DNA of 64,000 bases from Camelus dromedarius (lineage: Eukaryota): assembly GCF_036321535.1 (NCBI RefSeq), contig NC_087444.1, positions 44,082,001 through 44,146,000 of the forward strand. The letters run 5' to 3'. The notes below the pieces were generated by a model, which did not search any database, was not told where the DNA came from, and worked only from the letters and a program-made list of their open reading frames with translations. Shown in pieces: positions 27,601-63,430 of this stretch. Each line of letters starts with the position of its first letter. Position 1 is the first letter of the stretch. The translations under genes and the position numbers were made by a program.

Positions 27601-29224
27601 AAGCAGGACAGAAGTTAAGGCCAAGGGTTGGTCAAGGGAGGGGAGTCTTAAAGCAGACCCTCCCCATGTAGGTTAGGACCCCTTCCTCAGGAAAAGGGTA
27701 AGCCAGAACTAAAGCCTGTCCCTCCTCTTGCCTCCAGAAAGCAATTTGGGACTGAGAGGAGCAGAAGAGAAGGGGCAGGGGAAGAAGCCCGTCTGAGAAC
27801 TGGTAGCCACAGACTGACCCGCATGCGCTTTGCCACCCCAGGCACAGTAGCCTGGGGGAGACAAGGAACCTCAAGCTGTGAACCTGGTCTGAAATTTTTC
27901 TACCTGTAAGTGTCCCAACTGCCTATATAAGAAACAAATACAAGGCTGGAGGGGGCCACGTCCATTCCAGACCTTGGGGAAAGCCCCACAAATAATTTTT
28001 CAAAGCCAGTAACCGTAACCAGGTCAAAAATGACAAAATACATAAAGACAAGAGGGACTATAAGTCAGAACCAACAGAAGTAGAGCCATGATTACTGAAG
28101 ATACTGTAATTATCAGACAAAGAGGATAAAGTAATTACCCTTACTATGTTCTAAAAAAATGAACAAGCTGAAAATAACTTCAGAGAATAGTAAACTACAG
28201 AAAGTGACATGGCATTTTTTTAAAGAGCCAAAGGAAATTTCTAGAAACTTGAAGATAAATCAGAAGAAATTATCTAGAATGTACTCCATACAGACAAAAA
28301 AAAAAGAAAAAAAGAAAAAAAGAAAAGAATGGTAAGAGGGAACCATGGAGGATATAATGAGGGGAACATCTAACATATATTTAATCAGAATCTCAAGGAA
28401 AGAGAATAAATAGGTCAAAGGAAATATTTAAAGAGATAGTGACTGAATATTTTGAGTATTTTCCAGAATTGATGCAAGACACAAGTGGCCACAAATACCA
28501 GTGGCCCAGAAAAATCTCAAACAGAACAAAGAAACTGATATTTAACAGAAACAGAAAAAGCAATGAGAAAATATTAAAACCAGCCAGATAGAAAAGACCA
28601 TTTATTTTCGAAGGAGTGGCAATTAGACTTACAGATCATTCTCAACAGCAACAATGGAAACCATAGAAAAGTAGAATGAAATCCCTAATGTGATGAAGCA
28701 AAATACCTGCCAACCTAGACTCTATACTTAGCTGGATCATATGCAAGTCCAAGCTTTTGAAGACCCCTTAGGGCTCTTTCTAAGCTAACAGGTTGAAGAT
28801 GATGGAGAATGAAAGCAAAATAAAGACACTTTCTTTCAAGCGAAAACTGAGTTCATCACCAGCAAACCCCCACTAAAGAAAATTCTAAAACACGTACTTG
28901 AGGCAGAAGGAAAATTATATCTAGATGGAAGGTTGGAGATACAAAAAAAGAGTAAAGAGTAGAGAAAGTAGTAAAAATATGGACAAATGTATAAAACATT
29001 TACTGTATAGAACAGTAATTATAAAGTCTTGTGCAATTTAAAATAAAATGAAAATATTGTCCAATATAACATATAAATTGGGAGTGGGAAGTAGATAGAA
29101 TCAAAATGTTATAATATCAATGTGATGTTCAGGGAAGGGTAAAGGTTTTGATTAATTTTAGCCTTTGATAAATTAAGTGAGCAAGTTATCATTTTTAGGG
29201 TTAACATTAAAGCAAGGGTCAGGA

Positions 29225-29420: not shown

Positions 29421-31480
29421 AGGAACAGAAACAGAATATATCATTCCAAACTTGTTAAGGAAATAAAGGATATGGATTAAATACAGGCAAACAACTCTTT
29501 AAAGGCCAGAAAGAAAAGAAAAAAATACAATGAGTAAGATAAGGAGCACAAAATAAGATGGCAGATTTAATTCCAAATATTTACAGTAGGTACACATTAC
29601 ATTTACACTTACCTGTACATATGCATTAATTATAAGTGGACTAAATGCTCTAGTTAAAAGGCAAAAACTTCAGACTGTATAGAGAGAAATTATGTTGTTT
29701 AAAAATGAACAAACACATCTGAAACATAAAAATAGAGAAAAGTGTAAAGTAATAAAACAGAAATACTACTAAAAAGAAAGCTAATGTAGCTATATTTTAA
29801 AAGACAAAGTAGACTTTAAGGCAAAACACATTACCAGAGGTAAAGATAATAATGACATTAATTCCATCAGGAGGACAGAATAATATTAAATCTGTACATC
29901 CCTAATAACATAAGCTCAAAATACATACAGCAGAATTTAACAGAACTACATGGAAAAATAGATCAACAGCCACAGTAGATTCTAAAGTATCTTTTTCAAT
30001 TCAGTAAAGAAGATGAAGATATATAAGATTTGAAGAACTCAGTTAATAAACTAGACTTAATAAACATAAATAGAACACTGTACACAACAAAAGTAAAACA
30101 CCCATTTCAAACACATCTAGAACATTTCTAAATATGGCTCATATGCTGGGCCATAAAGCAAATCTCAATAAATCTCAAGGGATTTAAATCATTCAGATAG
30201 TGTATCTCTGACCACAATGTAATTAAGTTGGAAATCAATATAAAATATATAACTAGGCAATCCCCACATATTTAGAAAATTTAAAGACATACTCCTTTAC
30301 AACATACAGGTCAAAGAAGAAATCACAATTAAAAATTAAAATATTTCTAATTGAATAATAATAAAAACATCATATATTCAAAACCTGTTAGGAAATTTTT
30401 CTGAAGTAATACTTATAAGGAAATACATAGCATATATTAGAAAAACTAAAGGCTTAAAATTAGTTAAGTAAGCATCTACCTCAAGGAGTTAGAAAAAGAA
30501 CAATAAATTAAACCTGAAAAAGTAGAAGGCAGAAAAATAATAAAGATAAAAGCACCAGTTAGTAAATTAGTAAGCAAACATACAACTAAGAAAATCAACA
30601 AAAATCAAAATTGGCTCTTTGAAAGACCAACAAAATTGACAAACCTCTGGAGAACTGATAAAAGTCAAAGAAAAAAAGGCCCAAAAACCTGTGTCAGGTT
30701 GGAAAAGAGACACATCATTTATGCTATAACAGTAATCATATTAAACAGAATATTATGAACAATTTTATGCCCATAAATTTAACTATTAATCAAATATAAT
30801 TAAATATTATAAAAGTTCTAGGGAAATCTTGCTTACTTAATCTGAAGTAAGACATTCTTAACAGAAACAGAAATCCTAAATAGTCCTATATACTAAATAA
30901 CTTCCATCTATAGTCAAAGATCTTCCCATAGTGAAAACCCAAGATCAGAGAACTTCACTGGCAAATACCACAGAAAATTCTGGGATGAAATTATAATTTT
31001 AAGTTGGCCCAACCTCTTAATGAAGACTCATTTTATGAAGCTAGCATAATCTTGACATCAGAACCCAACAAGGCAGTATGAGAAATAAAAATTATGACTC
31101 TCTTTGAACAACACAGAGACAAAAATTCTAAACAAAGTGAGCAAACTAAATCCAGGAACATATAAAAGGATACTGCTGTGATCAAGTTAAGTTTAACCAG
31201 TACAAGGCAGATTTAACATTAGAAGAAAAATTAATGTAATTCACAACATTAACAAATCAAAGATGAAAATCGTAAGGATCATCACAATATATGCAAAAGA
31301 GATCTTTGACAAAATTCAGTATCTATTTATGATTTTTTAAAAAACCTTAGCAAATATAAAGGAACTTCCTAAATATGATAAAGGGTATATTTTTTAAAAA
31401 CCCTACAACAAATCTGATAAAGGGTATTTTTTTAAAAAAACTCTATAACAGATATACTGTCAAAAACTTTCCCTTTGAGA

Positions 31481-33092
31481 AATGGAAAGATACCTCATGC
31501 TCTCTGTTTGGAAAAATTAATACTGTTAAAATGGCCATATTATCCAAAGCAATCTACAGTTATAATGGGATCCCTATCAAATTACCCGGGACGTTTTTCA
31601 TAGAACTACAACAAATAATGCTAAAATTTATATGGAATCACAAAAGACCCAGAACTGCCAAAGCAATAGTGAAGAAAGGAATGAAGCTGGACTTCAGATA
31701 ACACTACAGAGCCACAGTAATCAAAATAGCATGGTATTGGCACAAAAACAGACATATCAATCAATGGAACAGAATAGAGAGCCCAGAAATAAACCCACAC
31801 AGCTATGGTCAATTACTTTTCAATAAAGGAGGCAAGAATACACAGTGGAGAAGACAGTCTCTTCAGTGAATGGTGTTGGGAAAGCTGGACAGCCACATGC
31901 AAATCAATGAAATTAGAACACTCCCTCACACCATACACAAAAATAAACTCAAAACAGCTTAAAGACTTAAATATGATAAGATACCATAAACATTCTAGAA
32001 GAGAACATTGGCGAAACATTCTCTGATATAAATGGAAGCAATGTTCTCCTAGGGCAGTCTACCCAGGCAATAGAAATAAAAGCAAAAATAAACAAATGAG
32101 ACCTAATTAAACTTATAAGCTTCTGCACAGCAAAGGAAATCATAAATAAAACAAAAAAAAAACCCTACAGAATGGGAGAAACTCTTTGTAAACAATGCAA
32201 TTGATAAGGATTTAATTTCCAGAATATACAAACACCTCATTACAACTTCATAACAAAAAAAAACCCAATCCAAAAATGGACAGAAGACCTANNNNNNNNN
32301 NNNNNNNNNNNNNNNNNNNNNNNNNNNNNNNNNNNNNNNNNNNNNNNNNNNNNNNNNNNNNNNNNNNNNNNNNNNNNNNNNNNNNNNNNNNNNNNNNNNN
32401 NNNNNNNNNNNNNNNNNNNNNNNNNNNNNNNNNNNNNNNNNNNNNNNATGCTGGATAAAGTATGGAGAAAAGGGAACCCTCGTACACTGTTGGTGGGAAT
32501 GTAGTTTGGTGTAGTCATTATGGAAAACAGTATGGAGATTCCTTAAAAAACTGAAAACAGACTCAACCTATGATCCAGAAATCCCATTCCTGGGCATATA
32601 NNNNNNNNNNNNNNNNNNNNNNNNNNNNNNNNNNNNNNNNNNNNNNNNNNNNNNNNNNNNNNNNNNNNNNNNNNNNNNNNNNNNNNNNNNNNNNNNNNNN
32701 NNNNNNNNNNNNNNNNNNNNNNNNNNNNNNNNNNNNNNNNNNNNNNNNNNNNNNNNNNNNNNNNNNNNNNNNNNACTTATTTACAAAACAGAGACAGATT
32801 CACAGACATAGAAAACAAACTCATGGTTACCGGGGCAGAAGGAGACGGTGGAGGGGATAAGTTGGGAGTTTGGGATTTGCAGATACTAACTACCATACAT
32901 AAAATAGATAAACAGCAAGGTTCTACTGTATAGCACCGGAAACTATATTGAATACCTTGTAATAGTCTATAATGAAAAAGAATATGAAAAGGAATATATA
33001 TATGTACAACTGAATCACTATGCTGTACACCAGAAATTAACACAACATTGTAAATCAATTATACTTCAGTAAAAAGAATAAAAAATTTTTTT
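31481..33092 (+). mobile_element. Younger 5'-truncated LINE-1 (ORF2 3' part and 3' UTR) with 17-bp TSD
   Basis: TSD AAACTTTCCCTTTGAGA at 31464-31480 and 33093-33109; ORF2 peptide ...[19 protein letters not shown]...[13 protein letters not shown]; A-rich tail. Confidence 0.93.
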
Positions 33093-33383
33093 AAACTTTC
33101 CCTTTGAGATAGGTAGCAAGATAAGGAAGCCTGCTATTACTGCAGCTTTTCTGCATGATTCTATAAGACCTAGGCTGTGCAATAAGAAAAGGAAGAGAAG
33201 CAAAATATACGTTTGGAAAGAAAAAAAAACAAACTTTATCATTCATAATGATAACATGAATACATTTTTTAAAACTACAGATAAACTATTATAATTAGTA
33301 AGAGTTTAGTAACGCTGCTGGATACAAAAAACCAATATTAAAACATCATTATACAATACTACATGAAATTTTTAAACGATCAT

Positions 33384-33825
33384 GTAATGGGCTCTGTTCA
33401 CTACAGGATGGCCCCACATGATTCCGGCTTCCGGGTAGTCGTGCCCCTCCCCAGGTGTGGGCTGTACTTAGTAACTCAGTTCTAATGAATAGAATATGGC
33501 AGAAATCACGAGATGTCATTTCTGACATCAGGTTTTTAAAAGACTGTGGCTTCCATCTTGGTTCTCTCTCCCTCTCTCTCAGATGACGTGCTCTGGGGAA
33601 GCCAGCTGCCAGGTCATGAGGCAGCTCTACGGGTTCCCTCCACAAGTCAAGCCTTTAGATAAAACCACAGCCCTAGCCATCAACTTGCCTGCAGCCTCAT
33701 AAAAGACCTTAATCCAGAGCGACACAGCTAGGTGCCTGACCCACAAAAACTGGAGATAATAAATGGTTGGGTTTTTGCCACTGAGTTTTGGGATAATCAG
33801 TCACATGTGGATAGATAACAATACA
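33384..33825 (+). mobile_element. MaLR solo LTR (MLT1-type)
   Basis: tgt...aca ends; gaatagaatatggcagaa, ggggaagccagctgccaggtcatgaggcagc and gagataataaat motifs. Confidence 0.75.
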
Positions 33826-34435
33826 GTCACCATTTACAATACATCAAAATATATCAAGTACGTGGAAATAAATCTTAGCAGAAATATGCAAAATTCAGAT
33901 AAAATTCTAAAACTTAGTTGGGACATACAGAAATAGTCTAGAGCACTCACCAACAGTCCCATCCATAGGAGGCTGCCTGATTTACAACAGAGGTGGTGTT
34001 TCTGAGCATTGAGGAAAGACCTGACTTTTCAATACATGGTGCTCAGATGGTTGGATATCCATGTGAGAAAAAAACAAAACAAAGCAAAATTCGACTCTAG
34101 CACATACCAGTCACGAAAATCAACTGCAGGTAAATTAAAGACCTGACGACGAAAAGCTCCAAAACTTCTGGGCAATGATATAGAAAGATGTCTTTCTGAC
34201 TTGTATCAAGGATGGATTTTTTGAACACAAAAGCACTAACCATAAAGTAGATGTTTAATACTTTATGAACTCAATTAAAACATACTGAACTGAAAATTTT
34301 CTATTCATCAAAAGACTACAGTGGAAAAAAGTGAACACACAAATCACAGAGTAGAATATAACTGCAATAGCATAAATGGCAAAGGAGTTGTATCCAGAAT
34401 ATATAAATATCTCCTACAAATCAATAAGAAAAAGA

Positions 34436-34810
34436 GGAGGAGACGCCAGGCGGCCGAAAGCGGCCCAAGCACGCCCTCCGCCCCCGGGACTCCGGCACCA
34501 AGGCGAGGCCGGGCTGACGCGGGCGGCCTTTTCCTCGCCAGAATCTCGACGCCGTCCTCCCCCAGCCCAGCCAGGACCGCGTCCGCCTGTACCTGTCGGC
34601 AAGAGAACCGCTGCTTCTCCTCAGGCCCCTCCTCATCCTCCATCATCATCATCACAGCAAGCGGTCCCTGGGAGGCGCTCGAGGACACAAAGAGGCTTCG
34701 GCCGGGAAGGCCCAGTCGGATTTTCCCGCCACGGCGCCGGGCGACGGGCCGCGTGGGGGCCCAAAGCGCGAAGCTGCCGGCTGCCGCCTCGCGCGCGCGA
34801 CCTCGGTAGG
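34436..34810 (-). pseudogene. CENPS: Inserted fragment of CENPS/APITD1: 5' UTR, coding exon 1 (34593..34643/34652) and about 155 nt of intron 1
   Basis: MEDEEGPEEKQRFSCRQ|gtacag versus recalled human MEEEAETEEQQRFSYQQ| (17 codons, phase-0 donor); E2F site GGCGGGAAA at 34730..34722; about 45 CpGs in 370 bp. Confidence 0.85.
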
Positions 34811-36334
34811 CCTTGCAAAATCCAATGTAGGTTTTTATAATTCCATCACCATAGTGTCACAAAGTCAGACCACGGATAAATGCTTGATTTCTATCCCACT
34901 CAGTGAATAAATTGCACACCCCATTAACATTGATAAAGGAGTACAGTTCTGACCCTAATGTTGGCTGATTTTCCTTTATGTCAAAAATTAAGTAAAAATT
35001 AAGTAAAATGAAACAATGAAACTCAAAAATAAAGAGGAGAAGTGAGGCTGAGACAAGGGCTTGGCTGTCTAGAAGATGATGCCAGAGGCGGAGTGAGGGG
35101 TGGCGAGAGTGAGACAGGGCAGGCAGACACCCCAATATAAGGGTGTTGTCAAGGTTGGTGCTGTAGACAGGGGCCCTCCAGGACCTCTGAGGAGCTCCAG
35201 AGCTGTTTCCATGAAGGTCAGGAGGTGGAGCACCTGCCCATCAGCTATTATGCCCCCATTCCAAGTTTGTCCCCCACACAGCAGCTGAAATCAGATTGAC
35301 CCTGGCACCAGAGACATATGCTACAAACAACCCAACGGGAAAAAGGCAAAAGATTTAAATAGACACTTTAAAAAAAAAAAGGCAGGATGAGGGAATCCAA
35401 CCAGCCAACCAGCCAATAAATATACGAAGAGATTCTGTATCTCATTAAATTGCCTTGGAAATACAATAACAATGAGATGCCACTACACCAAACAGGATGC
35501 CAATAATTAGCAATGCCAAGTGTGGCACCAGAGAGCAAGGGGAACGCTCAGCCAAGCAGAGGGGGACTGTAAATTTGTTCAGCCACTTCAGAAGACTGGC
35601 ATCATCTGGTGAAGTTGAAGATACCTATGACCTGTAGCCCAGAAATCCCACTCCCAGACATACACCTTTGAGAAACACGTATATATTTGCACCTCTACTT
35701 ACATACGAGAATGCTCATCGGAGTATTCCTTACAATAGCCCCAACCTGCAAACATCCGAAACATCCATCAACAGGAGAATGGGTTCACAGCTTGTCGTGT
35801 GGTCACGTACTGGATAGCATACAGCAGTGAACTTGAATAAACTGTACCTACACGACAACACAGATGAATCCTACAAACCTAATGATAAGTTGAAGAAACA
35901 TGGATTTTGCTTATATAAATTTCCAACAGGAAAAACCAAAACGAAGTTGTTCAGAGATACAGAAACAGGTGGTAAAATTATCAATACAAGTGAGGAAGTG
36001 AAGCCTCTAAATGTCAAGATGTTTCCCTCTCCGGTGTGATGGAGAAAGGAGGCTGGGGGGTTCTGGGTGGAGAGAGGGGGTTACATTATCGCCAGGGGAT
36101 TTGCTTTATAATTTTTGTTAAAATTGTGTGTATAGCCAGTAAATTCTCTATAGTTCACCATTTTCAATGTTTAAAAATAAAGAATTACATCAATAAAACT
36201 GATACACACACACACCACCTGTTCCCCCTTCGTGGGTTCTCTACTCCTGTTACAGAGAGGCCACCCAACAACCCAGGACCCCAAGTATCAGCCTTGATAA
36301 CTCAGTGAATGTGGGATAGACAGAGGATAGACAG

Positions 36335-36510
36335 ACAGTTGTTGGATGGATGGATGGATGGTCAGGTGGATGGCTGGATAAAGGGACAAATGAATGGATA
36401 GATGAACAAATGGAAAATAAAGGGATGATGGATGGATGGTCAGACAGAAGGATGAATGGATGAACAGATGAGTGAATGGACAAAGAGGCAAGTGGATGGG
36501 TGGATAAAAG
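36335..36510 (+). repeat. Degenerate (TGGA)n-type simple repeat
   Basis: ggatggatggatggatg arrays. Confidence 0.8.
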
Positions 36511-37685: not shown

Positions 37686-40164
37686 GCATACAAGTGGCAG
37701 CATGGACTTGTTTTCATTTCTCTGAGTAAGTACCCAGGGGTAGGATTGCTGCCCCATGAGATAGGTGTATATATAACTTGGTAAGAAGCTGACAGACTTT
37801 TCCAAGGTGGCTGTACTATTTTCCATTCCCACCAACAATTTAAGACAGTTCCTGTTGCTTCACATCCTCATTAGCACTTGGTATAGTCAGGTTTTTGCTG
37901 TTGTTTTGTTTTCACTAATAGGTGAGTAGCATTTTTCCATTGTGGTTTTAATTTGCATTTCTTTTATGATTAAAGATACTGAATATATTGAGATCTCCTC
38001 ACATGCTTATTTTCCACCCATATCCCTTCTTTGTTGAAGCGTTTGTTCAACTCTTTTGTCCATTTTTAATTGGGTTGTTGGTTTTCTTATTTCTGAGTTC
38101 GGAGAATTCTTTATATACCCTGGACACAAGCCCTTTGTCAGACACGTTTTGCAAATTTCTTACAGTTTGTGGCTCATCTTTTCATCTTATTAAGAGTGCC
38201 TTTTTGAAGAGCCAAAGTGTGCAATTTTAATGAGGCCTAATTTATCCATTTTTTGCATGCTTTTTGTGTCCTAAGAAATTTTTGCCTGACCCAAGCCACA
38301 AATATTTTGCCTATGTTTTCTTCTAAACTGGCAGCTGAGACAGACAGGGATACAGACAGTCGTAAGAGAGAGAAATAACTACTGTCAGGGTGGGGCGGGG
38401 GTGGGGAGAGCAAAGGTTGTGGAGTGAGAGAAGGCTCCATCCTAGATTTTGGAGATCAGGGGCAGCCAAGTTCATAAGGGTGTGTTGTCATCTTTCTGCA
38501 GATGAAAGATCTGTGGGCCAGTGTTCCAGGTAGCTGTCCCAAAGCCTGAAGGTGAGAAAGGACCTGTTTGGGGAACTTAACAGTTCAAGATGGCAGGATG
38601 GAGGAGGACGAGGACGGAATGGTGGGAGTCAGGCAGAAGAAGTGAGCACAGGTGGGACCCCCAGGGCCTTTCTAGCTCCAGTGGGGATTTTGAGAAGAAG
38701 GATGGTGGAGGGTGTGGAAGGGTTCCACCAGAGAAGTTCAGGCCACAGGACAGAAAATTCCCTTAAGTTTCTAAATAAAGCTCGGACTGGGAATGGGGAG
38801 GCAGGGAGGCCTGTATCGAGGCTCTGTGAGGGATGGAGGCTGGGTCTGGACCAGGGTTGATGGGAGGGCACCACGAGGTAGACCCCTTGAGTGTCCTGGT
38901 GGCAACCTTGGCTGACAAGGGAAGCCACTGGGGAGAAGCCTCAAATTGAGTGTGGGGCTCATTCAGTGGGCAGAGGGCTCCCCAGGCACCACATGTGTAT
39001 TCATTTGAAGGGTGAAAAGTGTACACCTCGGACTCCCAAGCCAATGCTCCTTTCTAAGAGTGTTGCAAGACTTAGGAAAAGAAAGAAAGAAAAATAAAGA
39101 TAGGGAGGGGGAGAGCTAAAGGATGCCCAGTTAAATTTGAATTTCGGATAAACAGTGAACATTTTTTTAGTGTATGTCCCCCAAATTGGGCATCCTGCAT
39201 TTTATCTGGCAACCTTCATTTACTACAGGACCCCTCTTCCCCCAACAATACACTCACGATGCCTTTTTGAAAAAAAGCAGCAAAGCGACACAGAAACTGC
39301 TGGTCTGTGGCCTTTCTGACATCTACTTGTCATTCTTCACCAGATGCCTCCTCAGAGACTCTGGACCTGAACAGTGGCCCCAAACCCCACCCATTCCATC
39401 TTCCTGCTAGTCTGGAAGCCCCCGAGAGCTGAGCCCAGCCCAGTCTTGGCAAGGCCGGGACCCTGCCGAGAGGGAGGGGAGAGCACAAAGGCCCAGCAAC
39501 GTCTCTCTCATCCCTGCCCCTACACCCGGTTGGGGCATTTCCAGGAAGTGGTCCCTGCCCAGAGCTTGGACCCCAAACGGGCTCAGGGCCACATGTCTGG
39601 GGCTGTTCTTGGAACTACCAGACCCATCTTGTGTCACTGTGGCCATATCCTCCCTTGGGTAGCCCTGGGCTTGGTATGATCTAACAGGCCAGACCCAGGC
39701 TAAGGTAGGGATTGGTAGGGATTGGCAGGGGGTGGTGGGTACCAGGCAAGGCCCTGCTTCACTGGACTATGGATGCAGCCTGGGTTACCACTCCCTGGAG
39801 CCGCCCAAGAGAGGGGCTAGAGGTTCCCACGATCACCCTCATTGGCACAAGGACCCACCAAGGCTAGGGAGCCTGGTATAAGCCAGCTGAGTCAGTGGGA
39901 ATTTAAATAGATTAGAGGACTGGAGAACTGAGGGGTAGGGAGACAGGTGGCAATGACCTATGGGCTGCACTGTGTGGGAAATGTTTCTAAAATGACAAAA
40001 GGTCAGCATGCCTGGAGCAGATGCCACTCTGGGGAAAGTGGGAGAGAAGATGGCAAAGCCAAGGGACTGCAGGATGTTCTGAGGGAGGAGCTGGGCCTGG
40101 AGCTTAGATGTGTGGGCCTCTGAGACTGAGTTAACACTATTAATAATAATAGCAAAAACGTTAA

Positions 40165-41942: not shown

Positions 41943-44900
41943 CTGCAAGCAAAAGACTGGTCAGTGGGAGCATCATGGGAGCAGTGGGGCACCTCCCCCA
42001 GAATCTAAGCACCTCCTTCGTTGGGAGGTGAGTTGGGCCTCCCTGAGGCCCAGGAGTAATTCTCAGAACCCCTTACTGTTGGAGGCCAGAAGAGGGCAGA
42101 GCACAGGAGCTGGAGGACCCAACCACCACTAGCCTGTTGGGTGCCTTTGTGCAAATTACAAGGTGGCGCCCCTTTCTATGGGTAGATGTAGCCCCAAACA
42201 AGCTTGTCAGAGGCTAGATTTCAGCCCCCAGCTCGTCCCCTTGACCTGAAGCCCTTCAGCAATAAATATACACCAGCTGTACACGCCCCTGGGGTTTCCT
42301 CCACGACACCCATAGGCCCTACCGTAGAGCGAGTTGAAGATGGTGAAGAGGAAGAGCTGGGGCAGCAGGAAGACGCCAAAGGAGAAGAAGGCCAAGGCCC
42401 AGGTGGTGCCCAGGAGCACGGTGAGGCCCAGCACGGTGACGGTGTCCCGGCAGGCCCGAGGGCCTGGCGCCTTCTCCTTTGCCCGCAGTTTGTGCAGGAC
42501 CCGCAGCGCCCAGGCCAGCACCACCAGGTTGAAAAGGGACGTGAGGCCACCATAGCCCATGACCAGGACACTGTGCACCCCAGGGTTCCGTACCCAGCAT
42601 CTGCAGGGAATGAGTGAAGCGCCAGGGTTGGTGTGGCTCCCAAGGCTGGTAGAGGGAAAGCCGCAGTCTTCTGGGCCTCTGGACTGCCTCTTGAACCTGG
42701 TCCTATTTCCCAGCCCAGACATATTGTTTCATCATGTGGTGAAGTCCACCACAACAGGACCCACCTGCTACCTTGGCCTCCTGCCCAAAGCCCTGGCACA
42801 CCTCCTTTCCAGCCACACCAGTCTCTCTCACTCCTCTGTGCCTTTACCCACCTGAAAACTCTTCCTCTCCTCCTGCTTCTACGGCCAGCCCAACCATCAA
42901 CTGGTATGCTATCGATTGGATCATTGGTCTGGAAACTTCTTCTACCCACCACATCGTTATCACCATCTCATCATCATCTTTGTGCAATGGCCCTAGGATG
43001 CCCTCTCCACTTATACTGGGCCACCTGCCCTTCCCTGAGCCTTGAATGAGCTGCTGCAACGAGCCTTGGTAGAGGGGCGCTCTCCATGTGTGGACTGAGG
43101 AGCAGAGGGAGCAGCAGGAAAGTTCCACCAAGGGCAGAGGAAAGAGCCAGAGAGATGCCTGACAGAGGCTGCATCCCTGGTCCTGCCCTCCCTGAAGTCT
43201 TCACTCCCTTTGCTTCCCCCAGACAACTGTAAGACAGGTGCTGCCTTTTACCCAGTCAGGTCACGTGATTTCTGTAAATCAGCTATTCAGTCCTCATGAT
43301 GACCCTATGAGGCAGGTGCGTAATCATCCCCATCCTACAGATGAAGAAACTGAGGCTCTGGTTTAGGAACTGACACTAGTAAGAGGCAAAGGTAAGACTT
43401 GAAGCCCTGTGATCTAAGCCCAGAGCTTGCATCCCTGATTGTCACGATCACCTGCTCAGGCTCTCACTGTGGGCTCCTGCCACTGCAGACACCAGGGTCC
43501 CTGAACATTATCTTGGAGAATTAGCCAAGTAGATGAGGGTGGTGGTGGATCATTCCTTTCCACTGTCTAGCAAGGGTGGCTCTATCACACTTACTAATCT
43601 GGTGTCCTGTCAGCGGGTACTAGAGTTATTTTCAAGGTTTTTTAGAATTGCTGTTAAAGAAGATGTGGTGTATATATACACGATGGAATATTATTCAGAC
43701 ACAAAAAGAAGGAAATCTTGCTATTTGCAANNNNNNNNNNNNNNNNNNNNNNNNNNNNNNNNNNNNNNNNNNNNNNNNNNNNNNNNNNNNNNNNNNNNNN
43801 NNNNNNNNNNNNNNNNNNNNNNNNNNNNNNNNNNNNNNNNNNNNNNNNNNNNNNNNNNNNNNNNNNNNNNNNNNNNCAGGAGGTGGGAGCAAAATGGGTG
43901 AAGCAGGTCAAAAGGTACAAACTTCCAGTTAAAAATAAATAAGTCCTGAGGATGTAATGGACAGTATGCTGACTACAGTTAATTACACTGTATTGCATAT
44001 TTGAAAATTGCTAAGAAAGTAGATCTTAAAAGTTCTTATCACAAGAAAAAAAAATTCTGTAACTATGATGACAGATGTTAACTAGACGTACTGTGGTGAT
44101 CATTTTGCAATATATACAAATATCTAATCAGTATATTGTACACTTGAAACTAATATAATGTTACATGTCAATTACACTTCAATTAAAAAAAGTTAAAAAA
44201 ATTTTTTAATTGTTAAAGAATACATACATACGCAGTAAGGGTTTTTTAAACGCAGAAGTATAAAAGTCACAAGATCCGGGGTAAGAAGGGGGAAGGAGCG
44301 GTGAGGAAGACTAAAGAGAAGCTGGTTCTCAGGGCGGGAGCTCTCTAACATCCCTACATTCATGTGCTTCCTGGGCTGGTGTGTCACTTCAGTTCTTTTG
44401 TCCATGTCACATACTAGATAATAAAACACCCTGTTTAATGAATCCTAAGTCACACTTCCTCTAAGAAACCACCCAACCCTCACAGTGAGAGGAATTAACC
44501 CCACCTCAGCTCCACTCCGAGCCAAGCCCCCACTTCCCAGAAGCTGGGAGGGGCGGTAGTTGGGGGCAGGACTCTGGAGCCAGCCTGCCTGTGACCCTTA
44601 ACGGGCTGGGTCCCCTTGGGCAGGGTTCTTCAGCTGCCTGAGCCTCAGTTTCCCTAACTGTCCACAAGGGCTGACAATAGGACCTACTCCTTGCTGTGAG
44701 GATTAAACAAGCTGACCCACAGGCCTGCCAACAGCATCAGCCCTCAGCAATCCTGAGCTCACGTCAGCCAGGAAAGGAAAAAAGGCCAGAAGGCCAGCTG
44801 CTGGTGATGGGTCTACAGGGGTTTGTTAAGCTAGGCTTGCTCTGTTGGCTGTTAGAAACTTTTCGTAACAAGAAAAGGTAAATGTCCCAGAGCACAGGAA

Positions 44901-47900
44901 GCAGCAGCAGAGTCTGTCCCCAGACTCCCCCAGGCCCCCTACCCCCACACACTCTGAGCCCAGTCCCTGGGGTGTCCCAGCCTCTACAACACTCTCTTCG
45001 CTGATTAGGAGTGTCTGAGGGCTGGCAGTGCCATGCCAGCACAGATTGGGGGAACCAGTGCCGGAGCCTGAGCAGGCGAAGCAAGGTGGTCGGTGGGGAA
45101 GAGCCAGGGGCAGGCTGAGCTCCACTGAGGGCCTGAGAGTCCAGGGCCAGGGATGGGGGGTGGTGCTGGCCTGCAGCTGTGCGTTGCCAGGAGGCCTGGC
45201 CTAGGAGGCCGTGTGTGGGCACTGGAGTCCTAGAGTTAGCCAGTGGCAGAATAGAACATGAGCCTGGCCCGCGAGAGGCCTTGGGGTTCCAGCACAAGGC
45301 TGTGGCCAAGCCCCCTGGAAACTGCCCCCTGTCTAAGAAGTGGCCCCCTCCCTGCCCCACAGCCAGTGCCCTGCCTGCAGGCCACCGTCTGGAGCCCCAG
45401 GGCCCAGTGGCCCTGCTGTCAGAGCCAGGGAGCTGCCGCAGCCCTAAGCACACTCACATGGACATGTTCTGGAAGCCCGTGCTGTTTCCCTGGCTGTTGG
45501 AGAGAGGGATCACGTAGGGTCCGTAAACTGAGCTCTTGACAGCAACAAGGAGCAGCACCAGGGAAGCTGGGACCCCTGAGGAGTGGGACAGAGGCTCAGA
45601 ATCTGTCAGAAGTCCCCAGAGGTGAGCTGGCTGTGAGTTCCTGGGGCTCCTAAAACAGAATTCCACTGGGCAAGTGAAGTGGCCGGAGGGAAAGAGACTG
45701 TTTCCAGCCGCTGTCACGTGATCCAGCCTCAGTGCAATCAGCCTGGTGGTCTTAGAGAAGGCTGTCTCCAAAGTGATATGAGTGAGGGCCCTAAGGTGGG
45801 ATGGTAGCAGCTGTAGTGATGGTCACAATGTGAGGTGGTGGCTCGGAGGTAATGGGAGAGAGGGTTTGGGAACTGGTGAGGAAGCAGCTAATAAAGTGAG
45901 GGGCTAGGATGGCAATAGAGATGGCAACGATGGTGGTACCAGAGACAGTGGTGAAGGTAAGGATGAGGATGGCAGTGGTGATGGAAGTGGAGGTGATGGT
46001 GGAGGTGATGGTGGTACTGGAGGTGGTGATGATAGAAGTATTGAAGGTGGAAGTGGTAATGAGAATAGCAGTGTAGGAAGCGGTGGTGGGTGTTGGCAGG
46101 GGTAACGGGTGGTCTTGGCAGCAGTCACCGTGATGAGGAGGAAGAGAAAAGGAAGGATGGAAGGGGCAGACATATGGTCTGGCTGGAAGCCTCAGGAAGC
46201 AAGAGCGGAGGGAGACTCTGCTTACCCCAGCCCACGGCACAGAGCTTGAGCACGTATCGGCGGATGTAGACGTTGTAGACACGCCCAAGTAGGAGGTAGA
46301 GGTTGAAGCCTTCAATGGCCATCCAGGTGAGGCAGCTGAGCAGTGAGTAGTGCAGGATGGCAGCCAGGGCCGTGCATGCTGACCCGGGCACGGGGGGCAT
46401 GGCCAGCACTGGGCTCAGCAGGAAGGCGACATTGAGGAACAGCACAGAGGCGTGCAGGTTCATGTGGATGCGTGTTATGGAGTCACTCTGCCTCCTGTGG
46501 GTGGGAGCATGGCCCTCTGTGACCTGGACATCACCAGGCAGTTCCACTCCCTGGGCTCATAGACACACAAAGACCAGGACACAGGTCGAGAGGGGCAGGG
46601 ACCCAAGAGCAGCCACACAGGGAGGCTGATCTCCTGTCTCCCAGGATCTGCCCTCTGGAGAAGCCCACCAGACTCTGGGGGACTGAGCAGGAAAGAAGGA
46701 GGAGGGCTGAGCATCAGTGGGTGGGCAGGCCCAGCAGGAGAGCAGGGGAATACCTGGCATAGAAGTGCAGCAGGACAGTGAGCAGTGAGGCCACGATGGA
46801 GATGCTGCAGCCCACCAGGGAGATGTACGTGAGAGGCGCCAACAACTCTGCAGGGACTGGGGCCGGAGAGAGTTGCTGTGGGAGGGAAGGAGGGCCAGAA
46901 GCATGGAAATACCCTCCCCAGGCTGAATTGGAGAGATCTACCAAGACCTTACCTCTAAGACCCCACCCTACAATCCTAGCTGTAGTCCTGGCTTGAAAAC
47001 AGCCATAGCAGACATAGTGGCCTTTCCACCTCCCAAGTCCCATCTCCCCTCCACTCCCTCATGCTCTAGGCACATGGGTGGACCCTCCACTTCTCCCACT
47101 ACGTGCAGTCAGGTGTACCAGGCCTGGACTATCAGGCCTATCCCTCCTCCTGCCCCCAGTGACTGATTAAGGGATGGGCATGTGATGCACCCTAGGCCTG
47201 TGAGACTCAGTCCCAAGACTTTGGCTGGCAGAATTGGGAAGACAGCTCTCGGTCTACTGGCCTGACAGCTTGCAGGACATGAGCCTGGGACTACTAGCAG
47301 CCATATTATTATCCCATGGGGAGATCTAAGCTAGCACAAAGCAAGCACAATTGACAGACAGAGATAGAATGAGATAGATCCTATCCTGGTGCTACTGAGC
47401 CCCTGGATCAAGCCGTGCCTGAGGACTTAACTCCAGCCTTTTCAGGAACATGAACCCATAAATTTCTTTTTTTTTTTTTTCTTAAGCCCATCTGAGTTGG
47501 ATTTTCTGTCTGTTGAATCAGCTTTTGCCTTTCTCCTCTGTCCTGGACATGGGGCTCTCTGCAGTTCTGACCACCCTCACCCAGGCTGGATGCGTACATA
47601 CCATGAGAACAGCAAAGTAGGTGAGGTGGGTGCAGCGGCAGAGCACCTGGGAAGGTGAGGGCTGCTCTGTGCGACAGCCCTCAGGGCTCCAGACCCCCCA
47701 GTGCTGTTTGCTGGCTCCCTCCTTCCAGAAGACACAAGTCACCATGTAGCCTTCCTAAGGGGAGATGCTGGAGTTGGGTGTATCCGAGGGGTGCAGGGGA
47801 GGGCTGTGGATCAGGGTCTGGAAATTGTGGGGGCCAAAGGTGACTCATCTGTACCCTGGTCAACATTTTACCAGGCACTGGCTGGGCTTTGACATCAGAC

Positions 47901-50900
47901 AGACCCAGATTCCAGCCCCACCTCCACCATGGACTCTGAGAGTGACCTGGGAAGTCATAGAAGTTTCCTGAGCCTGTTTATTCATTTGCAAAATGGGATC
48001 ATTTATACCCAAGTCACAAGGATGTGGAACAATCAAAGGCAATGAGGAATCTTGAGCACCCAGCTCTGGCCTATACAGTAGGTGCTCTATAATCAACTGT
48101 CCCCTTCCCTTGCCTCCCTTTAGGGAACAGTGATGGTCCAGTCCCTTCCCAGTGGGGGAGAGAGAGAGTCATCCACAGACAACCCTGATGCCAAATCATG
48201 TGGGTGGAGAGGTGCCATGAAATACCACAGAGGAAGTGACAGAGAAGTCCTGAGACGGGAAGGGACAACTGGGGCACTGAGGCCTTAGAAGATGCATCAG
48301 ATTTCAACAGAAGAGGAGCAAGGATGTACCAGGTGAAGGGAACCACAGGGATAAATTCCAGAATGAAAGAAAACATGATGGGAAAATTGGGAGTGCAGAT
48401 GGTCCTGATGAGGCAGACAGAAGATAGGGCCAGACTGCAGAGGCTCTAGGCTTTTCACAAATACGATCAGGGCTTGTGCCTACCCAGCAGCCCTTCTTCT
48501 TTCAGTATCAACATCTGCAGTTTCCTGGAGGACCCACCCATCCCCCAATATCAGGTCAAATAAATCCAGCCTAGTCTCTGGGCCATGTGACCCAGGTCTG
48601 GCCAATCCACCTGTCCCATGCCCCTGGGCACATTGATGGTTCTGGATGGACACATGACCCAGCTGGACCTTCAGGATCCATTGTAGATCTTGGTTTGCAC
48701 TAGTCAGAAAGAGCCTACTGAGAAGAGGGGAAGGAGTCCAGCACTTCAGCTGTTATCTTGCCACAGAGTGGAGAGCCAAGGCAGGAGACCATTGTTAAGA
48801 GATAGAGACTGAGCTATATGGCATCATATCAGCCCCTGGATCCAGCCATGCCTGAAGCTAGAACAGCCCTGGATGTTTCAAGTACATGAGCCAATAAAGT
48901 CCCTTTACTGCTTAAGCTGGCTTGAGTTGGTTTTCTACCACTTGCAATTCAAAGAATCCTGACTAATGCAGTGATTAAAAGCTTCTCTCTCTTATTTCTT
49001 TGGCAGGAATTCCCAAAGTGTGATGAATTTAAAGCAGTTTCCCAGATGGTTCCACAGGTTTGGGCCTCCTCAAACCAATGTTCAACAGGACAGTCACAAG
49101 GGGGCAGGGGTGGGGTGGAAATGGGGGTGTCCCCAACATTACCAGGCTTTGGTTGTGCCAGAAGCTGATGTTCACTGGCTCACTGAGGTTGTGCACATGT
49201 CCATGGCCCAGCTGGGCCCCCAGGACATAGTTATTGAGCAGAGATGAGTTGATGTCTTTCTGGAAAGGCAGAGAAAAAGGGCTGACTTGGGGGACATGAG
49301 GAGACCTTGGATGAGGTCCAAGACCCACCCCCCTCCTCCCTGGATGAGAAAAGCGGCATGGTTTTCATGTGTACAGCTGGGCCACTTCCCAGTCTTTACA
49401 CATGCTGCCCCCTCCACCTGGAAAGCTGACTTCTCACCACCACCCCCACCTCCCATTTGTTAAATGAATTCCAGCCTCATACCCTCCACCTCACCCTACC
49501 CTAATTCACTTTCAAAACCAAAGTTAAAAGGCACCTCCTCCAGAAGTTGTATCTCTACGGTTATAACCAAACCTGAGCTAAAATTAAGTCTCTTAGCTCC
49601 TGGTCTAATGGTTGAGCTATTTCTCCAAGGGCAGGGATCTGTGACCTACTTGTCTGCCTCCCATCTGGAGACAGGCACAGACACAGTAGATTTCTTAGGT
49701 CTCATTTGCCCATTGGAATTGCGCCTCCCTATCACTCTGCTAAAACTGAGCCCCAGAGAGGGGCACTGACTGGCTGAGGTTGCACAGTAGGCTGGTCCCT
49801 GCCCAGAGGCCAGGAGGTGGCATGGATACCTGTGATGCCCTCAGGAAGGGGCCAGCTCCCACCCTGCTTGGTCCATCCTGGAAAAAGTGGGTAGTGGAGA
49901 AGTAGATGCAGATGAGACGCAGCTCCCTCTGGTGGGTCCTGCAGGCATCTCTGGTCAGCTCCGCTGGGAACTGCATGGCGTGCTGGGCTGGGGCCTGCAG
50001 ACAGCCAAAGACAGGCTGGGCCTGGTGTCTGAAGACCCCACACTCACCGCAACACCTTCACTGCTTCCCACTCCTAGTGAAGCCTTCCCAGCCTGGCCTT
50101 GAGCATCTCCTACCTTGGAGCCTCTACCCACAGAACCCTCTCCTGCCAGGCTGCACCTCTACCCAAACTTCCCGAGGTCCCAGGCCTTCCCTCCAGGCCG
50201 TCCCCCCAGGCTGCTCCAGTCTTGAGTTTGGGTTATTTACCCCACCCAATTGGAGCTTGAGGATGGAGCACCTTAGGCCCCAGCACCCAGGCATTCAGCG
50301 GGAATCACAGCAGGATCCTCAAAGGAGCCCAGATTCCCTGGCCTCTCCCACAGCAGCCTCCCCTCAGGAACCTGCAAAAGCAGAAAGAAGATGCTGCTTC
50401 TGAGGGGCTATAAGCATCGTTTTTCCATCATTCACATGAAGAGTATCAGCTCCATTTTACAGAGGAGGCAATTCACAGCTATTAGAGCAGAGCCTGGATT
50501 GGTGGGGAGGAGGGTGATGGACCCTGGGGAAGGTCCAGACCTTAAACCCGTGGAGGATTTCTGGGGTGGAGGCACTGGCCACCCCCCATCCCCAGCCACC
50601 TCTGACCTGGGGGACCCGCCCCAGAGCAGCACTGCTCAGTGAGAGGCCAGTGAAGTCGCAGCCCAGCTTGAAGGCCAGTGTCTGGATGGTGTTCGTCTGC
50701 AAAGTGAGGTTGTGGCCCCCGAAGCTGGCGTTGAGCAGCCTACACTCCAGGCCATGGATGAGCCTGAAGGCAAGAGAAATGACCAGAGCCCCGAGTGAGG
50801 ATGGAGGTGAGAGGGGCTCTCCACAGCCTCCCCTATCCCATACCCTAATCTCCAGACATTTGCACACACAGTATTCCTGACACTCTTACCTCCCCACCCC

Positions 50901-51739
50901 ACCCATCCCCTTCTCCCAATTAACTCTCATTTGGGTCCCAGTTTGTCAGCGCCTCCTCCGGGAAGCCTTCCCTGGCTGCTTCTGGCTGACTAAAGTGCCC
51001 TAAAGTCCCCGTGCTTCCCTGGTTAGCCATCAGCATTGGCCTCTCACCCAGAACTGCTTGGCCTTTGGGTCATAGACTTTAGAGAGCCCAACCTGAGTCT
51101 CAGAGACACTTCTTAGAAAAATGCATGGAGACCCATGATTCTGTACCTGGTTTCATGGCATCCATGGTTAAGGGCCCCAACCAGACACTAAACTTGATGA
51201 GGATAGAAGTGTGTCTATCATGCATCTCCAGAGCCTAGTGCTGGGCACACACTAGGTACTCAATAAATGCATGCTGAATAGATGAATTTATAGTCTACAC
51301 TGGATCAACCCCGGATCATTGATTCAAGGTGCAAGCTGAGGGTGGAGGCACAGCTGACTCTGGGAGGATGAGGAGGGACACCCAACTCACTCAGCAAAAG
51401 AAGTCAAGCTCCGGCTCCTGGTCGCCGTCTCCATTCTCTTCATCCAGAGCAGGGTTTCTTCAGACGCCTCTGTGGGAAGAGTCAGACCACCGCCTCAGCC
51501 TCTGTCCGCAGCTGCCCCCAGCCCATGGCCTCCGGGCATTCCGCCCCAGCCTGCTGCTCCCCCAGGAGACCTAAGTGCCCCCTTCCAATCTCCCTTGCTT
51601 TCAGGCCTCCCCCTTCACATCACAGCCAGAGGCCTGGGCTAGGATTGCCCTCACAGCTCAGCACAGCCCTCTTACCCACTGTCCTGCTCTGAGAAGTCAC
51701 GAGGCACAGGCAGAGGAAAAGGACCCCATGGTGATCCAT
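41842..51739 (-). CDS. ADGRG5: Adhesion GPCR G5 (GPR114), complete spliced CDS in 11 coding exons; 1590 nt / 529 aa if the 49863 donor is used
   Basis: Exons assembled by hand with AG/GT sites and consistent phases. The protein runs MDHHGVLFLCLCLV...CVFWKEG...WSPEGC...CRCTHLTYFAVLMQLSP (GPS/Stachel)...7TM...EAFSSSHTMQ*, closely matching recalled human/mouse GPR114. Confidence 0.95.
42323..42600 (-). CDS. ADGRG5: ADGRG5 exon 11 (TM5-TM7), 278 nt
   Basis: ccctgcag|A acceptor, G|GTAGGG donor; CWVRNPGVHSVLV...FTIFNSLY. Confidence 0.95.
43655..44200 (+). mobile_element. L1 3' end in ADGRG5 intron 10
   Basis: gaagatgtggtgtatatatacacgatggaatattattcag...gtagatcttaaaagttc...aattacacttcaattaaaaaaa. 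Confidence 0.85.
45458..45575 (-). CDS. ADGRG5: ADGRG5 exon 10 (TM4, ECL2), 118 nt
   Basis: ctcctcag|GG acceptor, AT|GTGAGT donor. Confidence 0.93.
45790..46150 (+). repeat. Low-complexity GGT/GAT-rich tract in ADGRG5 intron 9
   Basis: ggtgatggtggaggtgatggtgg repeats. Confidence 0.8.
46226..46494 (-). CDS. ADGRG5: ADGRG5 exon 9 (TM2-TM4 start), 269 nt
   Basis: cccacag|G acceptor, G|GTAAG donor; contains RIHMNLHASV and WMAIEGFNLY. Confidence 0.95.
46754..46875 (-). CDS. ADGRG5: ADGRG5 exon 8 (QLSPAP...TM1), 122 nt
   Basis: cccacag|CAA acceptor, AG|GTATTC donor. Confidence 0.95.
47100..47520 (-). mobile_element. Old MaLR LTR (MLT1J/K-like); a similar element lies on the + strand at about 48560-48970
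   Basis: gccaataaa-type and tgagttggattttctgtc motifs typical of old MLT1; boundaries approximate. Confidence 0.6.
47602..47754 (-). CDS. ADGRG5: ADGRG5 exon 7, GPS motif with HL/T autoproteolysis site and start of the Stachel (TYFAVLM), 153 nt
   Basis: ccttag|GAA acceptor, ATG|GTATGT donor; translates as CVFW...W...GC...CRCTHLTYFAVLM. Confidence 0.95.
49143..49259 (-). CDS. ADGRG5: ADGRG5 exon 6 (KDINSSLLNNYVLGAQLGHGHVHNLSEPVNISFWHNQSL), 117 nt
   Basis: ctttccag|AAA acceptor, CTG|GTAATG donor. Confidence 0.92.
49863..49994 (-). CDS. ADGRG5: ADGRG5 exon 5 (APAQHAMQFPAELTRDACRTHQRELRLICIYFSTTHFFQ[DGPSR]); 3' end uncertain
   Basis: ctgcag|GCC acceptor. The homologous donor position 49878/49877 reads CAG|GA; in-frame GT donors lie at 49863/49862 and 49830/49829. 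Confidence 0.8.
50607..50763 (-). CDS. ADGRG5: ADGRG5 exon 4 (LIHGLECRLLNASFGGHNLTLQTNTIQTLAFKLGCDFTGLSLSSAALGRVPQ), 157 nt
   Basis: ccttcag|G acceptor, CAG|GTCAGA donor; lies within ORF 50457..50867. Confidence 0.93.
51391..51469 (-). CDS. ADGRG5: ADGRG5 exon 3 (EASEETLLWMKRMETATRSRSLTSFA), 79 nt
   Basis: cccacag|AG acceptor and GA|GTGAGT donor; the phases join exons 2 and 4 in frame; similar to human ETWEELLSYMENM. Confidence 0.85.
51676..51739 (-). CDS. ADGRG5: ADGRG5 exon 2, coding part (signal peptide MDHHGVLFLCLCLVTSQSRTV); exon begins at 51777 with 38 nt of 5' UTR
   Basis: Acceptor ttttccag|G at 51778/51777, ATG at 51739, donor G|GTAAG at 51676/51675 (phase 1). Confidence 0.9.
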
Positions 51740-62049: not shown

Positions 62050-63430
62050 CAAAATGGCAGGTCATTTGGAAGGGCACATGAATATAATTGCCCACGACCA
62101 ACGCGCCAGCCGCAGCCCCTCGGGGTCAGGAAGCACCCTAGCACATCCGGGAATACCTCCGCCCAGCGGGCCAAGTGCCCCACCACGCTTCTCAATACCC
62201 GTGGGGCTACTTTGGTCAGCCCTTGTGTCGTACAAAGGGGAAACTGAGGCCTAATGAGGGGCAGCGACTTGCCGCTCCACCTCCATTTGGTAGTAGAGCT
62301 GGCCCTGGGAAAAATGCAGGTAACAAAAGTCAACACTTGGTAAACACGCTCCACGTGCTTAGCCCGGAAAGACAGTATCCAATTCTGCCTCTGGGCGCTG
62401 AGCACATTGTTGGCGCTCAAGAAACCTGAGGCGGGAAAGCTGAACCCTGCGGAGGCCCCCAGACCCTGCCTTCCGTCCCCCAACCCTCGGCCCCCAGTTG
62501 GGGGTGGGGCCTCTGTCGGGGTCCGGCCCGCTCTGTGCTGGTCCCACCGGTTCGGCCCGCGACCCTCGCCCCCAAATCAGGCGGGGGTTCCTCACCCCTG
62601 GCCAGGGTCAGAGGTAGGCCGCAACCCCGCCAGGGCCCTACCACCCCCGCCCCGCCGTCTCCTCTCCCTCTCCCTCCCCTCCCCCCGGGAGGGAGGAGGA
62701 GACTCCGCGGCCCTCCCTCGGCCCTCCCGGCGGCGGCCGCTGTAAGCCCCGTGCCCGCTCCGCCCAGCCGCGGCGGGTCGGACGTCCGGAGCCCGCGGGT
62801 CCCCCGCCGAGGTGAGAGGGGACAGCAGCGCAGGGGGCCGAAAGCCACCGCGTCCCGGGATTTCCCTCTAGGCCGCGAACCTTCCGCGGGAGGGAAGGGG
62901 TTAAGCTGAGGGGCGTGCTGGAGGAGAGGGGAGCAGCGGGGGCTCCCGCGTCCGCAGCAACCCTCAAACTCCCAGCAGAACTTCCTAGCCTCCTCCTCGG
63001 GTTCCCCCACCTCCTGGGGCCCCAGGCCTCGGGAGTGAAGGGGCTGCGGGAGTTGGGGGAAGGTCAGGACCGCCCTCGGAATGCAGTGGGCCTGGCTGGG
63101 ACGAGAGGGGGGCCGTGGCGGGCGGGGGCGGAATTTGGAACTCTCCCGGGGGACCCAACGTGGTCACCATGGCGAGTGCGGGATGGACGGGCGGCGTGGG
63201 CCAATCGGAGCACGGCGCTACTGCCCCTGTCCCGCTGCGGCTGCCAATGGGGGGCTGCGCGGCGGGGTGGGCGGGACCCCGTCGCCCAGGACCCAGAGCC
63301 CCTGTGCTCTCTGCCAGCCGCTAGGGGGAGCGGGGCGGCTGTGGAAGGGGCGAGGAAGGGAGGTTAAGGCGACTCCTGGTCTTGGGAGGACAGAAAGCGA
63401 ATTTCTGAAAGGAGTGGGACAGGTGGAGTG
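62050..63430. promoter_or_regulatory. CCDC102A: CpG island, probable CCDC102A promoter
   Basis: Very GC/CpG-rich, with GC boxes and CCAAT (ggccaatcgg, about 63198). Gene name comes from the recalled synteny CCDC102A-ADGRG5-ADGRG1, not from coding sequence. Confidence 0.7.
62700..62811 (+). other. CCDC102A: Candidate non-coding exon 1 of CCDC102A
   Basis: GAG|GTGAGA donor at 62811/62812 inside the island; divergent orientation to ADGRG5 as expected from synteny; start approximate. Confidence 0.45.

Follow-up and report, generated by a model that had tools for sequence, protein, structure and literature searches.

How did a short CpG-dense block that reads like the start of a gene come to lie in AT-rich DNA downstream of ADGRG5 in the dromedary, and from which gene and by which route did it arrive there? 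In the window (the whole stretch of DNA that was analysed, 64 kb long, to which all coordinates refer) the positions 34436-34810 hold 46 CpG in 375 bp, with a GC content of 0.715 and a CpG observed/expected ratio (o/e) of 0.97. The same ratio is 0.33 in the left flank, 0.12 in the right flank and 0.195 in the whole 64-kb window. Counted in bins of 50 nt, the left edge of the block passes from GC 0.26 without any CpG to GC 0.78 with 7 CpG at 34436/34437, and at the right edge the count falls from 6 CpG per bin to 0-1 past 34810. These counts agree with the preliminary description of the locus, in which a CpG-dense island of about 45 CpG in about 370 bp with sudden edges had been reported. The features that are discussed below are compiled in Table 1.

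Table 1. Features in and around the CpG-dense block and the neighbouring gene (window coordinates)
Feature	Positions	Strand	Description
Old L1, left half (ORF2 3' region)	33095-34434	+ (sense)	ends ...AATAAGAAAAAG, G at 34434; orthologous in bat
Target-site duplication, left copy AAAGAGGAG	34431-34439	+	exact 9-mer; single equivalent in bat
Intron-like segment	34440-34592	-	153 nt right after the GT donor, GC 0.75, 20 CpG
Exon-1-like coding stretch	34593-34652	-	ATGATGATGATG followed by 16 codons, MMMMEDEEGPEEKQRFSCRQ
5' UTR/promoter-like segment	34653-34810	-	158 nt, GC 0.74, 24 CpG, CpG o/e 1.11
AT-rich segment (segment b)	34811-35030	+	220 bp, GC 0.33, 1 CpG; missing from bat along with the CpG block
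Target-site duplication, right copy AAAGAGGAG	35031-35039	+	exact 9-mer
Nested non-L1 piece (segment c)	35040-35322		283 bp, GC 0.56; outside the insertion
Old L1, right half	35323-36200	+	resumes at ACAAACAACCC, to the 3' end near 36200; orthologous in hippo, zebra and bat
ADGRG5 coding exons	42321-51739	-	ATG exon 51739-51677; last TM exon 42599-42321

Limits of the inserted unit and its empty site

As had been proposed, the neighbour of the block is ADGRG5 on the minus strand. Two regions (46128-46556 and 42210-42728, minus strand) gave Pfam matches to 7tm_2, and the same two exon regions scored 169 and 159 bits against the ADGRG5 structure 7eq1 compared with 78 and 48 bits for ADGRG1. The top matches of a full-length search were the ADGRG5 proteins of Camelus dromedarius and Vicugna pacos, with a per-exon identity of 96-100% and 89-100%, respectively. 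The CpG block is located about 7.5 kb downstream of this gene, with its exon-like reading on the same strand and directed toward lower coordinates. On the other side of the block, at lower coordinates, ADGRG1 would be expected from the synteny in other mammals.

Outgroup loci downstream of ADGRG5 were fetched through the ADGRG5 proteins of those species, and all fetched mammalian loci are collinear with the minus strand of the window. Only the locus of the black flying fox Pteropus alecto (L005) extends past the site of interest, as the hippo sequence reaches to about 35140, the zebra sequence to 35563 and the sheep sequence to 36523, which is about 100 bp, 530 bp and 1.5 kb short of the right copy of the target-site duplication (TSD), and the gray whale contig ends early. 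In the jaguar (L006 26431-33149) the flank downstream of ADGRG5 could not be aligned past window position 38325, and no homology was detected for the remaining 6.7 kb, which is suggestive of a large insertion or replacement in that lineage.

In Pteropus alecto, window positions 36303-35032 align up to position 28133 of L005 and window positions 34429-33987 align from position 28130, with no Ns there. A global alignment of the bat sequence with a reconstructed pre-insertion sequence, in which a single 9-mer joins the nested piece to the left L1 half, is unbroken across the junction; 591 bp are absent from the bat orthologue, and a single stretch equivalent to AAAGAGGAG is present in it. This clean empty site with one target copy supports the earlier proposal of a displaced insertion, and the sequence comparison indicates that the insertion is lineage-specific and took place on the camelid lineage after its split from bats.

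The empty site and the flanking repeat also indicate the extent of the inserted unit, which is 34440-35030, i.e. 591 bp made up of a 371-bp CpG block and a 220-bp AT-rich segment. The extent of 34436-34810 (375 bp) that had been given before therefore has to be replaced by these limits. The flanking repeat qualifies as a TSD, exceeding 5 bp and being represented by one copy at the empty site in Pteropus, and of its left copy 4 bases belong to the end of the old L1 fragment and 5 to the older nested piece. The 9-mer alone is statistically weak, as repeats of at least 9 nt occurred in 14% of block shuffles, and it owes its weight only to the empty site.

The 3' end of the AT-rich segment is formed by a tract of 48 nt with 65% A (34983-35030), which ends with CAAAAAT against the right repeat, so that an A-rich 3' tract abuts the TSD, though it is degenerate and not pure. 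The segment contains the poly(A)-signal variant AGTAAA at 34991 and 35002, of which the copy at 35002-35007 precedes the last A run by 17-23 nt, and a canonical AATAAA at 34906, 77 nt before the A-rich tract, whereas a poly(A) signal is usually expected 10-30 nt ahead of the tail. A local alignment had been suggestive of an L1 fragment that continues across the break, but this candidate was dropped as the likeness of the AT-rich segment to L1 did not go beyond chance (z of only 1.4-1.7 against shuffles). The nested piece likewise showed no resemblance to L1 beyond chance, and for neither of the two segments was a repeat found in the window or in about 180-240 kb of fetched mammalian DNA. An Rfam scan of 33000-36500 returned sub-threshold noise only.

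The nested piece sits flush within the old L1, is single-copy in all DNA searched and shows an identity of 80-90% to hippo (L001, up to the end of that locus) and 77% to Pteropus (L005). Since it is found in hippo and bat it is not part of the insertion, and judging from these sequences it is an ancient resident of the L1. A composite insertion of 888 bp (34435-35322), flush in the L1, was also considered and was ruled out because hippo and bat carry 35040-35322. By the same comparison the landing point is the junction of the old L1 fragment and the older nested non-L1 piece. The block had been described as lying inside AT-rich L1, which is correct for the left flank. The right flank, in contrast, begins with the co-inserted 34811-35030 and continues with the non-L1 sequence 35040-35322 before L1 is reached again at 35323. 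A second old copy of the repeat in the window (38245-37929) aligns with the left half up to the break (38245-38082) and with the right half from the break. As the L1 ORF2 C-terminal pieces were not recognised by Pfam and ESM Atlas, the label L1, which we assume for the flanking halves, rests on sequence recognition and on this repeated in-window copy.

Several other repeats were observed around the old L1. A young L1 3' end in sense orientation (+) at about 31000-33090, with a poly(A) ending near 33090, is inserted into it and contains N-masked runs at 32292-32447 and 32601-32774. A segment with GC 0.49 at about 33400-33800 within the old L1 was recognised as a putative MaLR-type LTR fragment, and on its 3' side the old L1 is directly followed by a (GGAT)n / GGATGG-type microsatellite (36330-36480).

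With one outgroup alone reaching the site, one might think of an assembly artefact, or of a precise deletion in the bat in place of an insertion on the camelid lineage. Both are extremely unlikely: the block is part of gap-free sequence with the nearest N run 1.6 kb away, collinear orthologous DNA is present on both sides, and a misjoined assembly would not lead back into the original locus and duplicate a 9-mer there, while a deletion in the bat would need to remove exactly one repeat copy together with the A-tailed unit.

Gene-start anatomy and the source of the CpG block

Read on the minus strand, the block contains all elements in the order that the preliminary description had listed, namely E2F site, 5' UTR, ATG, GTACAG donor and a GC-rich intron, the last of which is 153 nt long compared with the about 155 nt stated there. 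The E2F motif is an exact GGCGGGAAA on the minus strand, corresponding to TTTCCCGC on the plus strand at 34722-34729. The exon-1-like frame starts with ATGATGATGATG, which is four times ATG (minus strand 34652-34641), and has a length of 17-20 codons with QRFSCRQ as last residues and 34593 as final base. Its phase-0 end abuts the donor CAG/GTACAG with the GT at 34592, and two Sp1-type GGGCGG boxes are located within the intron-like segment. Neither a further CENPS-like exon motif nor an exon 2 was found in the six-frame translation of the 64-kb window. A processed pseudogene consists of spliced exons joined without introns, and the CpG block is not of this structure. As promoter-like sequence is followed by one short exon and, after a GT donor, by 153 nt of noncoding GC-rich sequence, without an exon 2 in the window, we share the earlier view that the block is not an ordinary processed pseudogene.

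The gene from which the block derives is probably CENPS, to judge from the exon-like peptide. We take human CENPS to begin with MEEEAETEEQQRFSYQQ and its exon 1 to stop after that Q. Compared with this sequence the peptide from the last Met in the window, MEDEEGPEEKQRFSCRQ, would be identical in 10 of 17 positions without gaps and would agree with it in length and in ending at phase 0, and the presumably conserved CENPS motif QRFSYQQ would correspond to QRFSCRQ in the window with two residues being different. This likeness is suggestive, yet it is short and much of it falls into acidic low-complexity sequence.

Searches for a CENPS link gave no positive result in the collections that were covered. 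A PDB phmmer search with the 20-aa peptide yielded no match, and among the proteins of 56-178 aa in a database of 5.8 billion sequences none had three 5-mers in common with the exon peptide (the query was region 1-40 of the 102-aa read-through ORF, and three exact 5-mers were required in the cluster representative). Look-ups of the exact ORFs gave no record, no related loci were found in metagenomes, a degenerate exon/donor pattern did not match any metagenome or prokaryote genome contig, and a literature string search for the CENPS link was blank. All these blanks would be expected if the block originated from another CpG-island gene or from a noncoding promoter transcript, with the 17-codon likeness being due to chance, and the shortness and partly low-complexity nature of the similarity, two positions off the presumably conserved motif, point in the same direction. 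We nevertheless regard such an origin as possible but clearly less probable than CENPS. The blanks are weak evidence, given that the DNA scans covered hardly any mammalian sequence and that a protein match depended on three exact 5-mers; human CENPS would share with the block the length of 17 codons from Met to donor, the phase-0 Q end, the QRFS core and the acidic N-terminus; and an E2F motif suits a cell-cycle gene.

Camelid proteins are present in the protein database, as the matches to ADGRG5 of Camelus and Vicugna show, and the blank obtained there mildly argues against a near-identity of the copy to the cluster representative of its parent. An older copy that has been kept unmethylated would therefore fit better than a very recent one, although this argument is weak because of the clustering at 90% identity.

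Route of insertion

The TSD, the A-rich 3' end and the clean empty site together point to target-primed reverse transcription by the L1 machinery, acting on a non-L1 RNA, and we assign a probability of about 0.85 to the reading of 34440-35030 as such an L1-type retro-insertion. This figure was not set higher because of the noncanonical nick site and the impure tail. The nick site on the bottom strand reads CTCCTCTTT/TTCTT, which is T-rich but differs from the canonical TTTT/A, and if the TSD is taken as 14 bp with 2 mismatches the nick reads TTTTTCTT/ATTG. A retro-insertion of this sort is a known and fairly ordinary type of event. It has been described that L1 ORF2p inserts polyadenylated fragments of intronic or intergenic RNA with a TSD, which are termed class 1 templated sequence insertions (TSIPs), whereas class 2 TSIPs are without TSD and without poly(A) (PMC5110952).

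The impure poly(A) and the noncanonical nick site, together with the inclusion of promoter-like sequence upstream of the ATG, would also be compatible with an event at the DNA level without L1, either as a double-strand-break patch of the class 2 type or as a small segmental duplicate taken from the 5' region of CENPS. We consider this very unlikely, as the unit is bounded by a 9-bp target duplication that is single-copy in the bat, and the A-rich end is located exactly at the right repeat. Class 2 insertions with their NHEJ-type junctions show neither TSD nor poly(A) (PMC5110952), while the TSD and the A-rich end are both present here, and the idea of a composite patch of 888 bp fell once the nested piece proved to be ancient.

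Within L1-type retro-insertion, our favoured account is the insertion of an unspliced CENPS-like 5' transcript by the L1 machinery with its 5' part inverted by twin priming, and taken as a whole we give this account about even odds. In this scheme the L1 endonuclease and reverse transcriptase would have copied a non-L1 RNA in trans, after nicking of the T-rich target at the junction of L1 and nested piece, and nine bases, AAAGAGGAG, would have been duplicated. The template would be an unspliced RNA that started in a gene's 5' CpG island, CENPS being the most probable gene, and in the simplest case a short exon 1-intron 1 RNA resulting from premature polyadenylation inside intron 1. Reverse transcription from the poly(A) end of this RNA would have yielded the A-tailed 3' segment of 220 bp in sense orientation. 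A second priming on the other target strand, starting 153 nt into intron 1, would have run to the 5' end of the RNA, and the 371-bp 5' segment, which comprises the 5' UTR with the E2F motif, exon 1 and the beginning of intron 1 (153 nt), would hence appear inverted, as known from twin priming.

As the A tail sets the sense of the AT-rich segment to plus and the gene-like reading is on minus, two templates fit. In the alternative, the same L1-mediated event would have used one contiguous antisense RNA of the plus strand without any inversion; this RNA would be unspliced and polyadenylated, would start or be 5'-truncated in CENPS intron 1, run through exon 1 and the promoter and end in upstream AT-rich DNA. 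The TSD, the A-rich end on the plus strand and the empty site fit this template as well as they fit twin priming, one priming event is needed compared with two, and twin priming has to assume an intron-containing template. Class 1 TSIPs from intronic and intergenic RNA are moreover documented (PMC5110952). On the other hand, transcription of the antisense RNA would have to begin downstream of exon 1, antisense RNAs from promoters are confined to the nucleus and turned over quickly, and the parental island would have to stop within a few bases, with GC 0.74 and 24 CpG on one side and GC 0.33 and 1 CpG on the other side of 34810/34811. Natural CpG-island shores are usually gradual, whereas a switch of this kind is what an inversion junction should give. 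This abrupt change makes us lean slightly toward twin priming, and we regard the antisense template as the less likely one of the two. What the sequence displays of the twin-priming geometry is the arrangement of the segments and the sudden change at 34810/34811. Among polymorphic processed pseudogenes about 13% carry a 5' part inverted by twin priming, and among L1 insertions about 18-22% (PMC12016303).

Relation to known insertions and possible promoter role

With its unspliced non-L1 insert of hundreds of bp, the TSD of at least 5 bp, the A-rich 3' end with a putative cryptic poly(A)-signal variant upstream of it and a donor that is presumed to be intact elsewhere, the unit resembles the class 1 TSIPs (Onozawa et al., reviewed in PMC5110952). 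It differs from them in the degenerate tail, in a nick site other than TTTT/A, in the seeming inversion of its 5' two-thirds and in its cargo, which is a whole CpG-island promoter core. In addition, TSIPs have been described as human polymorphisms, whereas the camelid insert is fixed in the reference assembly.

Twin-priming 5' inversions were reportedly described by Ostertag and Kazazian in 2001. The unit shares with them the order of TSD, inverted 5' segment, sense 3' segment with A-rich end and TSD as well as an abrupt junction. Compared with typical cases, however, its template would be unspliced and the inverted part (371 bp) would be longer than the sense part (220 bp), and both segments are presumed to come from one RNA. 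Another comparison is offered by semi-processed retrogenes that retain an intron, e.g. rodent preproinsulin I, which arose from an incompletely spliced transcript including sequence upstream of the usual start. An incompletely spliced transcript with upstream sequence would likewise be the source of the copy in the window, but rodent preproinsulin I is a whole functional gene and the copy described here is a 5' fragment with 20 codons only.

The 371-bp block, with GC 0.71 and o/e 0.98, is a CpG island according to Gardiner-Garden and Frommer (a minimum of 200 bp with a GC content of 0.55 or more and a CpG o/e of 0.65 or more), and it is shorter than the length of 500 bp used by Takai and Jones. 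The dinucleotides in 34440-34810 (GpC o/e 1.07, TpG o/e 0.55, CpA o/e 1.01) carry no trace of CpG decay, from which we infer that the block either is of recent origin or keeps itself free of methylation in the germline. By its sequence it would represent an orphan CpG island and a possible promoter with a usable donor facing ADGRG1. One step further, it might act in camelids as an unmethylated, E2F-responsive alternative promoter and first exon, the donor at 34592 splicing into ADGRG1 at least about 13 kb downstream on the same strand. This is very unlikely in our estimate, but if it were true, an adhesion GPCR gene would have acquired a cell-cycle promoter with a retroposed unspliced 5' fragment.

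Precedents for such a role exist, as about 3% of expressed retrocopies inherit the parental promoter (Carelli et al. 2016, PMC4772013), and in RB1 the CpG island (CpG85) of the retro-pseudogene PPP1R26P1 has turned into an alternative promoter of that gene (PMC4537222). Like these, the camelid block is a retroposed CpG island that may stay unmethylated, possesses E2F and Sp1 motifs and has a downstream gene ahead of it. Unlike these, it has no coding body, being confined to 371 bp of promoter-proximal sequence that include a donor, and its site is intergenic rather than intronic.

If the proposed route is right, the locus would provide a base-resolved case of a CpG island made by retroposed unspliced promoter-proximal RNA, with both a TSD and an empty site in an outgroup, and insertions of this kind are documented as one way in which orphan CpG islands and new alternative promoters arise. 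Should the block prove free of methylation and be transcribed, one could learn from it, as from a natural test, whether the protection of an island from methylation is encoded in its own DNA once it has been placed in an L1-rich, CpG-poor setting. As a lineage-specific structural variant, the insertion could also serve as a presence/absence marker for the phylogeny of Camelidae and Artiodactyla.

A larger CpG island with 80 CpG, GC 0.73 and o/e 0.69 was observed at 62541-63400. The ATG exon of ADGRG5 is located about 11 kb downstream of it, and from its sequence and position this island may be the promoter of ADGRG5 or of a neighbouring gene.
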